62,472 nt of DNA, filler included, from Choristocarpus tenellus KU-1152 (GCA_964200185.2; 9 parts of 9 records of this genome joined end to end with filler, not necessarily neighbours in it); one strand, 5' to 3'; positions 10,183 through 29,522 are shown, numbered from the whole stretch's first letter. Made by a program: numbers and translations. The notes: generated from the letters alone by a model not told the origin.

Positions 10183-10500
10183 CTGAAAATAATGGTTCAC
10201 ATAATTCATGTTTTTGAGGACAGGAGGACAAGCGGGGAATCAGGAACAGGTTGAGTGTGAGGGATATGGTGTCATTGGAGGAGAACAGGGGGAGGGGGGG
10301 GGGGGGGGGGAGGGGGGGACCGGGGGAAAAAAAACCCTTGTTGGCCCGTTTTCTGGGTAAAAAAAGGGGGGGAACAGGAATCGANNNNNNNNNNNNNNNN
10401 NNNNNNNNNNNNNNNNNNNNNNNNNNNNTTAATTAATTAANNNNNNNNNNNNNNNNNNNNNNNNNNNNNNNNNNNNNNNNNNNNACCCCCTGGGCCGCCC

Positions 10501-10674
10501 GGGGGGGGGGGGGGGGGGGGGGGGGGACTACACCAGGGTGTCTATTTGGGCCATAACCAGGAAAAGTGCACTTTCATTATCCATCCGACTTATGGAATCA
10601 AATCACCCAAAAATCGCGACATGAAAAATTGGCCCTAAATGGACAGCCGCAAACACCCCCAGATACTTCGAGTC
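10501..10674 (-). mobile_element. MITE family B at contig start
   Basis: polyG-ACTACACCAGGGTGTC...AAATGGACAGCCGC...CCCCCAGATACTTCGAGTC; matches other copies. Confidence 0.85.
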
Positions 10675-10699
10675 TGCTGGCGGTCACACATTCATACCA

Positions 10700-11200
10700 C
10701 TTCCTCTGCCGGATAGTGGCCCTGGTGCTCTAATCCTCAACCGTAGTTCCAAACTTCTTTGTCTTGGAGGCATATCTTCCTTCTCCAGTCCACCTTGCTT
10801 TTATTTCCAGCAGCTCATCCCCCATGCATGGAACTGACTCAGCAATAGGATTCTCCACTTGCTCATAGTTGACATGAGACTCTTGCACCTAGTCTTCACA
10901 AGAGAGCATCTTTGTAGGACAGGAAATGATCAGTGCGTTCCAGTTTGCGGAATCCAATGCGTGGTAGAAGGGATTAGTGGTGATGTGAGGGAAGGTCAAG
11001 ATAATGGGTCTGGCACCTATCATACAACCATTTAATAACAGAACTTCAACCACCCTGTTCTTGACCTTTCGAATCTTGAGGCCAGGTGATACGCGTGAGG
11101 TCGTGTCAGATACCGCTTGGCTGTATTTGCGAAAACAAATCCAAGCTCTCTGAATCCTTTGGCGGATGTCAGGAGTGACAACGAGCGGTAACTGGTGGTA
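10700..11200 (-). mobile_element. Degenerate RTE-like LINE, C-terminal part of reverse transcriptase ORF
   Basis: TPDIRQRIQRAWICFRKY...LKIRKVKNRVVEVLLLNGC, then after frameshifts HHKSLLPRIGFRKLERTDHFLSYKDAL. Typical post-RT region of RTE-clade LINEs. Confidence 0.65.
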
Positions 11201-26236: not shown

Positions 26237-26402
26237 TATCTGGGGGGGGGGGAGTCTACACCAGGGTGTCCATTCGGGTCCTGACCCGGAGAAGTGATCT
26301 TACATTATCCATCCAACGCATGCAACCAAATCGCCCAAGAATCGCGGCATGGAAAAATGACCCCAAATGGACAGCCGCCACCCTCCCCAGATACTCTGAG
26401 CC
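26237..26402 (-). mobile_element. MITE family B at contig start
   Basis: TATCT-polyG...CCCCAAATGGACAGCCGCC...CCCCAGATACTCTGAGCC. Confidence 0.88.
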
Positions 26403-26461
26403 AGAACAGCTTGTATCCAACCAAGCACTGTTTATCTCCCCTAACCTTCGAAGGTGTCCAC

Positions 26462-26716
26462 GAATCAAAGTAACTTAGAGGGTAGAGCCGCGTCCGTTTG
26501 GCGGCAAAAATCTAATGTTGAAAGTTTGATGTAATTTTGGCGATCATGTTTGTTAGGAAGTGTCAATATCCTTGTTCCTAACACACCCTTTCATAACATA
26601 CACATTTTTCCTACTCAAAACATTTCGGTAGGTTAAATGCCATAAAAACCCGTGGGATTCCAAGTCCCAAATGGACAAACAGGGTAAAACCCTTACCCTC
26701 TGAGATACTTTCTCTC
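26462..26716 (+). mobile_element. MITE family A, diverged full-length copy
   Basis: GAATCAAAGTAACTTAGAGGGTA ... TACCCTCTGAGATACTTTCTCTC; no clean TSD. Confidence 0.85.
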
Positions 26717-27317
26717 TGGAGTCTCAGGAGGTTAATAGACCTGCATTGGTGACTGACAGTAAACGGATTGCTCAAGCTGTTTTGTGAGTGGGATGTGGGA
26801 CTAAGGGTGTATGTGATGGAGCAAGTGATGACCAGCTCAGCATTGGGACCCTATTTGACCTGGTGTACGACTGGATCACCTCTCATGCTGTGCACCACAG
26901 CCTGTCGTAGTGTGTACATGGTGTTGGACAACAGTCCAATCACACCTTGAGTGAGGGGAGGGATGCTACTGTTACAAGTGTGCAGTGTCGTGGGTAAAGC
27001 ACATGTATTGGATAAAGAAGTCGAATAGTATATTTGGTGATTGATTGAATGATTTTGATTAATGTCATCCTGCAATAGAATTTTGTCTCCAAGCTTGCAC
27101 TTCAGTTCAGTGACCGTTGATACATATTTGTTGGTTTTGTCGTGTGCAAGTAAGTGGTCGTTTACTTTGGCACGTTTATTGATAGTGCTTATTTTTGTGG
27201 TTTGCGCACTTCTTTTCTGATACTACAGAAAAAATGACAAGCAAATAAACCGTTACCGTATCAAATGTTGAGAATGGCATGAATATAAACATAAACGATT
27301 GTATAATGTCAATAATA

Positions 27318-27658
27318 CAATTAAAACAGCTTTTGCTTGAATGACATCTCCCTTAGACATATAATATAAAACCTCCTTTTCTCCAATCAAGGAATGTTAC
27401 TTTTCTTGATATTAAGTACATCTGGTCAAATGGTTTTGCTTGTTTTAATAGACTATTAACAAGATCTCCGGCTAAAATTTCTGGGTGGGCAGATATGTCA
27501 TATATTGGCTTGTCAGATTAAAGAGCGCTACATTGTCCTCCTCCTGGAATATCAAGTGCATCTATAATGCAGCTCTTCATACCAAGCATTCCTGCTTGAA
27601 ATGCACCAAAAATACCAATCGGTCCTGATCCAATAATAGCAATATCTGTTTGCTGCAT
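27318..27658 (-). pseudogene. Bacterial TrxB-type ferredoxin-NADP+ reductase (YumC-like) N-terminal fragment, alphaproteobacterial / Rickettsiales-like
   Basis: Hand translation from ATG 27658: [76 protein letters not shown]...(frameshift)SKGDVIQAKAVLI. Contains GxGxxG and the GGQCxxLYPEKPIYDI motif with Tyr replaced by TAA (27520-27518). Intron-less, AT-rich, absent from the ORF track. Confidence 0.88.
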
Positions 27659-28115
27659 TTAACCATGAACAGAAAAAAAAGAGGATCACTATCAGCTACA
27701 TAATATCGAAATGAAAGATGAAATGGCGCTAAAAGTGATTCTAGACCACTAAAAAACAATTTATTTAATTAATATTAAATTTTACACTTACCAACAGAAA
27801 CAATGGGGTGTAATAAAGTTATGATCGTGTTTCAATGTTATGTTTTTGCAGTACTAGACTCGTGTCTAGTACCATTGAAATTGTTAGTAGGTAGTCTTTA
27901 CTAGCTAGGAGCTGGTTAAAAATAGACAGAAACACATGAAAGCAAATTAAAAATAAGTGGTTATATTAATACGAAGGACTAGGGATAGAGATCCAAAATG
28001 TCAGAGGGCATAATAATAAAATAGAGATCCTAAGTTGAAATTATCTGTATAATCTATTATATTCGTATTTAGATATCAGATTTTTTAAATTGAAATTGAA
28101 TTGTTGCTAACTCTA

Positions 28116-28250
28116 GAGGATTATAACGACTATGAAAACAAAAAAAGGTACTAAAGGCAAAGCTAAGCGCATAGCTAAAAAATATTGTGTTCTTGCTGGT
28201 ACGTAGGTATTAGGTATATCATCTTTTAAATCAGTTGCTGCTGAATTTTA
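28116..28250 (+). pseudogene. Bacterial-type exported-protein N-terminus with Shine-Dalgarno site, interrupted by stops
   Basis: GAGGA at 28116-28120, ATG at 28132: MKTKKGTKGKAKRIAKKYCVLAGT*VLGISSFKSVAAEF*. Basic n-region, hydrophobic stretch, VAA cleavage-like site. Confidence 0.45.
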
Positions 28251-28327
28251 GGAATGTTAATATATTCATTAACTAATGATGAGCTTCTGAAAGAAAATGA
28301 ATCTAATTTAATAATATGAGGCTCATA

Positions 28328-28735
28328 TTATACATTGTAACTTTTTATGAACTGTTTTATCTTTTTAAGTTCAATTACATGATTTTCAGCACAATCAAAG
28401 CCAAGAGCATAAATTTCGTATCCTTCACTATCTATCGTGGCAAGAGGAGCTTTGAGGGTAACCAGTTCATATATTTTTTCTGGTATATCCTGCTTAGATA
28501 TATCCAATGCTAATACAGATACCTCTACACCTTTAGCTTTAAAAGGCTGTATAATAGATTTTGCATTTTCCGATACCGCTCCACGTCTACTTACTTGTAT
28601 TAAATATTTAGCACCTCGTTCCACTAATAACTTAGATAACTGCATTCCAAGCGCACCAAAAGCACCGGTTAAAGGGTATGTCGAATTTGAAATAACCTGG
28701 TATGATGCAAAGTTTGGTACGGTAAAATTATATTT
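28328..28735 (-). pseudogene. Type I polyketide synthase ketoreductase (KR) domain fragment, truncated and fused to unrelated sequence
   Basis: STYPLTGAFGALGMQLSKLLVERGAKYLIQVSRRGAVSENAKSIIQPFKAKGVEVSVLALDIS matches the KR consensus TYLITGGxGxLG..A.WL.ERGA..L.L.SR....G.EV....D. The downstream H-A-A-G motif and catalytic Tyr are missing. Confidence 0.85.
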
Positions 28736-29487
28736 TTATTATTATGCCCTCTGACATTTTGCAGATGTGTCAGGGGGAAACCANNNNNNNNNNCATATGT
28801 GTATATAAAATGTCCTAAACATAAGAATACTATAAGACAATGCGTGGAAACCACTAATCAGTTACATAATTATATTGTAAACGAGCAATATAACGCTGCC
28901 CATCTTGATATGCAAGTTGGTTTACAGTATCTTAAACAATAAACTGTGATTTCCAGTACAGTCCCTGGTACAGTTCAGACTTGGTGTACATTTTAGAGAG
29001 AAGAAACGAGGCCCAATAGTAGGAATTGAGGCCAAGTTGATTTTACGTACCTTATAAATGTAGACAATCTTATGGAGTAATGTATGTATATGGTTTTGTT
29101 GCTGTGGGTCCATCATCGAGGACCTTGCTTAATCAGGTGTAGGAAGTTAAGTATATTTCAAATACTTCCAAGTGCTTGACAATATCGATATATCAATACT
29201 CAGTATTTTATTGAAGAAGCAATGATCTTGTCCATACCTCTTCTTTGTGGTGGAATTAGTAGATCGTACTATATCGTAAGTCCTCAGAAATGCATCAATG
29301 GATGTTTGTGACAAGATCATCTCAACATCCTCTGTACTCTCCACCACGGCGATCAACCTTGCTCATAGCCAACTGAATTGTCATCTTGAAAACTGAAAAA
29401 GAGTGTAAGTACATGGCTTGGACATGGACGGTTCCTGATTCAGTATCACTCACTATATACCACACCAGCAGCAGGCAATTAATGAAA

Positions 29488-29522
29488 GACCCAAAGTATC
29501 TGAGAGGGGGGGGGGGCTCTAC
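29488..29522 (-). mobile_element. MITE family B end at contig end
   Basis: GACCCAAAGTATCTGAGA-polyG-CTCTAC. Confidence 0.75.

Follow-up and report, generated by a model that had tools for sequence, protein, structure and literature searches.

The DNA considered here (the window) is a stretch of 62,472 nucleotides, filler included, in which parts of nine records of the Choristocarpus tenellus KU-1152 genome are joined end to end. We confined our analysis to one of these records, CAXNAD020021037.1 (assembly GCA_964200185.2), which is 3286 bp long and occupies window positions 26237-29522. Within it lies an AT-rich block, delimited by composition at 27020-28949, that holds pieces of three bacterial-type genes: a modular polyketide synthase (PKS), probably the 7-cyano-7-deazaguanine synthase QueC and a TrxB-type ferredoxin-NADP reductase (FNR). 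QueC and TrxB-type FNR are prokaryotic-type genes. All three fragments have minus-strand orientation and follow one another as PKS, QueC and FNR, each measuring 270-420 bp. GC content is 32.7% from 27020 to 28934; the unique sequence on the left of the block (26787-27019) has 49.8%, and the flank on the right (28935-29426) 38.2%. The left edge of the block is sharp, GC falling from 0.44-0.52 to 0.28-0.30 over about 50 nt near 27000, and the right edge is soft in composition. A preliminary description of this DNA had recognised the AT-rich block, a broken FNR, a truncated PKS ketoreductase (KR) domain and repeats at both ends of the contig, and our results bear these out; the mixed orientation that it gave to the gene fragments was mistaken. 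No mention of the record's accession was found in the literature, and tRNA and Rfam scans returned no matches.

The FNR fragment (27316-27658, minus strand) was identified by PDB matches, by tblastx to 57 FNR genes from GTDB and by alignments to two loci, L001 and L012. Read on the minus strand from 27658, it corresponds to codons 1 to about 113 of about 340. Its best PDB match is 5ygq (E 5.7e-8), followed by further FNRs. Like the TrxB-type FNRs of known structure (5ygq, 2zbw and 3lzw), with which it aligns over about 100 residues, it has the N-terminal FAD-binding GxGxxG motif and fold and the GGQ..YPEK.IYD region (GGQC..LYPEKPIYD in the alignment). Unlike them, it is the first third of the protein, with neither an unbroken frame nor the NADPH-binding domain and C-terminal region. 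A TAA codon at 27518-27520 takes the position of the conserved Tyr in bacterial LYPEKPIYD, the frame shifts near 27360-27365, and homology is gone below about 27316. An Atlas search with the FNR piece was uninformative, and a search for homologous proteins with a 46-aa piece, confined to a length range that leaves out full-length FNRs, returned no match.

The PKS gene is represented by two parts. Part B (28442-28734, minus strand), recognised by the Pfam KR family and by homologues, comprises the pre-Rossmann linker and the first half of the KR catalytic subdomain. It sits in a 135-codon open stretch (28735-28331, minus strand) which matches PF08659 over profile positions 2-75 of 180 (E 3.8e-15) and the KR domains of modular PKSs in the PDB (E 4e-8). 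The start of the Rossmann NADPH-binding fold, TGxxGxLG, is present as TGAFGALG. Homology stops at profile position 75, nt 28442, so that the second half of the subdomain, with the catalytic residues, is absent. At this point it meets QueC homology in the same frame, which places the breakpoint within about 10 nt (28432-28442). Part A (28868-28931, minus strand; NQLAYQDGQRYIARLQYN...) was found by tblastx and tblastn to residues 41-60 of L059/P0027 and to L060/P0044. It corresponds to the residues directly N-terminal to part B in P0027 and P0044, and in L060 the two parts are contiguous, part A at 10462-10518 and part B at 10519-10758 (tblastx/tblastn). Beyond the stop at 28932-28934, weak PKS similarity may extend to about 28949. 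The fragment is thus similar to the KRs of modular type I PKSs (PDB 3slk and 7s6b; P0044) in its pre-KR linker and TGxxGxLG start, with 48-49% identity to P0027 and P0044, and differs from them in its truncation and in being interrupted by a repeat. The second-best phmmer match of the KR open reading frame (ORF), P0002 (E 2e-26), was rejected as a repeat-inflated score: this tandem galectin-like repeat protein covers residues 98-126 only, ten times, at 23-31 bits each, and QueC accounts better for these residues.

The probable QueC fragment (28161-28432, minus strand; about positions 20-106 of the 210 of the Pfam profile) was recovered in two pieces. One, at 28331-28441, matches PF06508 over profile positions 20-53 (E 0.025); the other, at 28116-28247 and in another frame, matches positions 85-106 (E 0.024). 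The gene is interrupted by a stop codon (28328-28330) and shifts frame somewhere in 28229-28247. Both pieces gave QueC as their only Pfam match, at 14.5 and 14.6 bits, below the curated cut-off of 22; they are colinear on one strand and lie 35 codons apart, compared with 32 intervening profile positions. A QueC-like family (0.24) was the sole match in the PHROG library, and PDB and NCBIfam searches of the pieces returned no match. Judged on these profile matches, it is very unlikely that the same family would be drawn by chance, in the right order, by two pieces among 24,736 families. On the opposite strand, overlapping the piece at 28116-28247, lies a 23-codon ORF (28135-28206, plus strand) which had been described earlier as a signal-peptide ORF led by a Shine-Dalgarno (SD) sequence. 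It matches no protein family, and we regard it as spurious, being the antisense of the QueC fragment.

Parts A and B of the PKS are separated by a high-copy short repeat, a non-autonomous element at 28735-28867 with a depth of about 2.7e5. Direct comparison revealed a 9-bp target-site duplication, AATTATATT, on its left (28726-28734) and right (28868-28876) sides. The two copies match perfectly and in the same codon phase, and the length of the PKS fragment across the repeat junction is that of its homologues. Loose contig ends at 28734/28737 show differing flanks among the copies of the repeat. A high-copy host repeat has transposed into the PKS fragment and split its colinear homology. The ends of the element are not inverted copies of each other, in a sequence of which the gap leaves part unread. 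This gap of 10 N (28784-28793), pointed out before, lies inside the inserted repeat and is crossed by no coding frame; the loose-end consensus of other copies, that is, of the family and not of this locus, suggests that about 12 nt are missing there. As the PKS halves are colinear across the gap, the order and orientation of the scaffold join are supported, whatever the true length of the gap. At 27995-28020 the left terminus of the repeat recurs as a 26-nt inverted copy, which is bracketed by a perfect 10-bp direct repeat, ATAGAGATCC, the whole segment spanning 27985-28030. The copy forms a 28-nt perfect inverted repeat with 28734-28761 and has a depth of about 3e4. This segment could be the footprint of a lone terminus from a second insertion that made a duplication of its own, or it may belong to the consensus of the repeat family.

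Read evidence was taken from Logan contigs of two runs of one study, X1 and X2; in X3, a run of the same study from a different organism, no reads matched the record. A single X1 contig (record 6, 26661-28021, zero mismatches) runs from within a high-copy repeat through the GC-rich flank and takes in the FNR fragment entirely. Records 11-13 of X2 repeat this coverage, record 12 (26985-27168) bridging the transition from GC-rich to AT-rich sequence, and the X2 contigs include one that spans 27160-27852. The QueC and KR block is found in X1 record 7 (27998-28752), both ends of which are in repeat sequence. X1 record 8 (28836-29513, zero mismatches) joins 32 nt of the right end of the inserted repeat to PKS part A and the right flank. 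Depth over the unique parts is flat, at 29.1, 28.2 and 27.5 for the three long X1 contigs and about 5 (roughly 4-8) in X2. No second copy of the block at 90% likeness or more was found in either run, and depth stays at single-copy level. At position 27673 one X1 contig (depth 15.7) is one A short in an A-run, beside the main 29x contig; an allele or a homopolymer error are both possible.

Four highly repeated stretches were found in the record (26237-26786, about 27992-28027, about 28723-28866 and 29427-29522), with summed depths of 3e4 to 1e6 and about 18,600 matching X1 contigs across them. The left end (26237-26786), earlier described as the miniature inverted-repeat transposable elements MITE-B and MITE-A, consists of high-copy interspersed repeats with a summed word depth of 1e5-1e6 in X1, compared with about 29 for unique sequence, and thousands of distinct contigs match there. 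The right end (29427-29522) has a depth of about 2.6e4. A G-run motif and the D1 and I3 repeats are common to both contig ends.

According to these results, we consider it probable, at roughly three chances in four, that the block is fossil bacterial DNA, without function, which became part of a repeat-rich, presumably nuclear, genome. A repeat with tens of thousands of copies cannot belong to a bacterium, and this one transposed into the PKS fragment; therefore, this DNA resided in the genome that bears the repeat. Since it resided there and its genes are broken, a living contaminant is ruled out and an assembler chimera becomes very unlikely. The decayed patchwork proposed in the preliminary description, as opposed to a living contaminant, is upheld by contigs of two samples that are free of errors and even in depth, and by the host repeat that jumped into the PKS fragment with a 9-bp duplication.

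We propose that three fragments from an AT-rich bacterium would have been joined at breakpoints that remove most of each gene, by end-joining of fragmented DNA at integration or by later internal deletions; this joining step is one that we infer. After integration, the DNA would have acquired a nonsense mutation and frameshifts, as any host sequence does. Later, the short high-copy host repeat would have transposed into the PKS piece, generating the target-site duplication.

Several points weigh against this interpretation. The host is presumed to be a eukaryote from the copy number of its repeats, and the QueC matches are individually weak (E about 0.025 each). Depth was compared within the record, across the block and its flanks. 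Neither the 24-nt repeat arm at 27998-28021, between X1 records 6 and 7, nor the N gap is bridged by any run contig, so the adjacency of the FNR block and the QueC-PKS block rests on the submitter's scaffold. Elsewhere, continuity of the block with host sequence is supported by contigs of independent reads: the joins of the left flank to FNR and of the inserted repeat to the right flank stand in error-free contigs.

The decay of the block is light. There are zero stops in the 135-codon KR/QueC stretch and one stop and one frameshift in FNR; the target-site duplication is perfect, and the repeat terminus agrees perfectly over 28 nt in its two copies. Thus, the transfer seems to be of fairly recent date, and so does the activity of the repeat. 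If the transfer was recent, low identity to known bacteria would reflect an unsampled donor and not erosion; no FNR relative exceeded 56% in the fetched GTDB and metagenome loci, and no KR relative exceeded 49% among the representatives searched. It is tempting to think that the piece is the visible edge of a more extensive and fairly recent integration, derived from an intracellular bacterium that is AT-rich, carries PKS genes and has yet to be sampled, an idea that we put forward only tentatively. The endosymbiont named as the source in the preliminary description is likewise presumed, not observed.

The affinities of the donor were explored with the KR and FNR fragments. The KR search was exhaustive over 1.84 billion representatives, standing for about 15 billion proteins, and returned the fragment itself, followed by P0027 and P0044 at 48-49% identity. 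The contigs of these two relatives have 34-37% GC, a third-codon-position GC content (GC3) of 0.21-0.32 and tightly packed same-strand genes with SD-like motifs, an organisation that is bacterial; the GC3 of the fragments (0.20-0.24) resembles that of these AT-rich contigs. One of the nearest KR relatives is encoded on L060, a Logan contig of run SRR26324620 (23.6 kb, 37% GC), in a compact multi-gene modular PKS cluster that also contains two thioesterases, an AprA-type loader and a small protein with faint EF-hand matches. For FNR, a GTDB scan with a 54-aa piece yielded 57 loci, mostly from AT-rich metagenome-assembled genomes (MAGs) of marine Flavobacteriaceae and other Bacteroidota, with some Alphaproteobacteria, and the metagenome scan (80 loci) contained nothing closer to the fragment. 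The GTDB, metagenome and viral scans were seeded by exact 8-mers (HPEILAGD and SDKPIYDI for FNR), so the sampled loci are a biased set, and the FNR loci include no Rickettsiales.

Among the FNR loci, L035 (1623-3873) and L115 (3-2235) encode an FNR with the LYSDKPIYDI motif as in the window, 43% identical overall to the window fragment. L035 is a 175-kb GTDB contig of an uncultured bacterium with 27% GC, and the identical gene pair occurs in a JGI metagenome (L115). The gene beside this FNR encodes a NuoN-like membrane protein and is very AT-biased, for which reason the source looks like a reduced-genome organism. A 20-aa match between this neighbour and the sequence upstream of the window FNR was discarded as chance, as it contains a stop and is hydrophobic and of low complexity.

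The preliminary description had called the DNA Rickettsiales-like, which leads to the most specific of the alternatives: a Rickettsia- or Megaira-like endosymbiont as donor, the insert recording a past association between alga and rickettsia. Some Rickettsiales have PKS or non-ribosomal peptide synthetase (NRPS) genes, as well as a TrxB-type FNR whose N-terminus is similar. The AT-rich composition would fit such a donor, and rickettsial inserts in an algal nucleus have a precedent (PMC4324946). Against it, an alignment of about 110 columns gives the FNR fragment 56% identity to its best Bacteroidota relative and 50-51% to alphaproteobacterial MAGs, which is as far as these two groups stand from each other (56% identity), and in a maximum-likelihood tree it forms a long branch with no supported placement. 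None of the 57 GTDB and 80 metagenome loci is from Rickettsiales, in a sample that was seeded by exact 8-mers and is biased, and in a tblastn search of plasmids KR reached at most 37% identity to any PKS. A Rickettsiales donor is not supported by these comparisons with the sampled Bacteroidota, alphaproteobacterial and plasmid sequences, and we consider it rather unlikely.

A host origin would have the fragments descend from functional genes of the host, themselves gained by horizontal transfer at an earlier time, as pseudogene copies that transposon capture or segmental duplication produced and shuffled. Type I PKSs are commonly encoded by algae, and the block is interleaved with transposable repeats. 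However, the absence of a second copy at 90% or more in either run, the single-copy depth, and a composition and GC3 unlike those of the GC-rich flank all speak against it. The fragment itself excepted, no PKS above 49% exists among the 1.84 billion representatives, and QueC and TrxB-type FNR are not known as usual eukaryotic genes. We find this origin improbable, more so than a rickettsial donor.

A lower probability still attaches to an integrated giant virus, or another mobile element with bacterial-type genes, as the immediate source of the fragments. Some large viruses and phages have genes for PKSs and for the queuosine pathway, the present DNA lacks introns and is AT-rich, and the PHROG match was to a QueC-like family. 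But IMG/VR contained no viral relative of KR or FNR, which, given the exact 8-mer seeding, is a weak test; Pfam scans of the piece detected no viral hallmark gene, and the closest relatives of KR belong to PKS clusters with an operon-like layout. Least credible of all is an assembly chimera or contaminant, in which reads of a culture bacterium were stitched to host repeats: the scaffold is short, has a 10-N gap and contains two unbridged joins at repeat arms, but in two samples non-branching k-mer contigs link FNR to the GC-rich flank and the host repeat without a single mismatch, the unique parts all have equal depth within each sample, the genes are broken, and a target-site duplication around the repeat in the PKS is beyond what an assembler creates.

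The remaining parts of the record are without recognisable genes. The unique GC-rich left flank (26787-27019; X1 depth 29.1, on the same error-free contig as FNR) gave no match in Pfam and Atlas searches. The unique right flank (28950-29426; 38% GC, depth 27.5-33.8) gave in Pfam only a weak match to TRF (E 0.016). A stop-free stretch of 123 codons (26854-27222, minus strand) that runs across the AT/GC boundary is probably a chance ORF, with no Pfam match and an uninformative Atlas search. Within the repeats, CCCTCTGA, or the G-run motif, recurs at 26237-26259, 26696-26711, 29485-29522 and 28747-28776, and elsewhere in the genome the run contigs often join repeats directly, 28023 to 29487 and 26383-26403 to 29488. 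The shared motif and the direct joints suggest that the high-copy repeats are related or nested families.

Fossils of bacterial DNA in host genomes are already known, and the block is a new instance of this kind. The closest parallel comes from Volvox carteri strain EVE, whose nuclear genome contains an insert of rickettsial gene-like sequence of about 9 kb (Kawafune et al. 2015, PMC4324946). In both cases, bacterial gene-like sequences are neighbours in an algal genome without the need for a living symbiont, which in Volvox was read as endosymbiotic gene transfer. The donor of the Volvox insert was placed phylogenetically among rickettsial endosymbionts, whereas the FNR fragment studied here has no supported placement; the fragments of the present block, at 270-420 bp each, are also shorter and more strongly rearranged, and a host repeat interrupts one of them. 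Transfers from Wolbachia to the host nucleus are known in arthropods and nematodes, and such inserts are in general non-functional, fragmented, rearranged, decaying and colonised by host transposable elements, as is the case here. They differ in host group and donor, and in our case only 1.9 kb are seen and no living donor is known.

In summary, the fragments are without function. Dead bacterial inserts in protist and algal genomes mark past intracellular associations and are often dismissed as contamination. This block carries an internal proof of integration, a repeat with its target-site duplication together with uniform depth in two samples, and could thus serve as a positive control for screening the rest of the assembly. 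If the donor was indeed an unsampled intracellular bacterium, the insert would record a lost symbiosis of the host, one that could be dated through the repeats inserted since.

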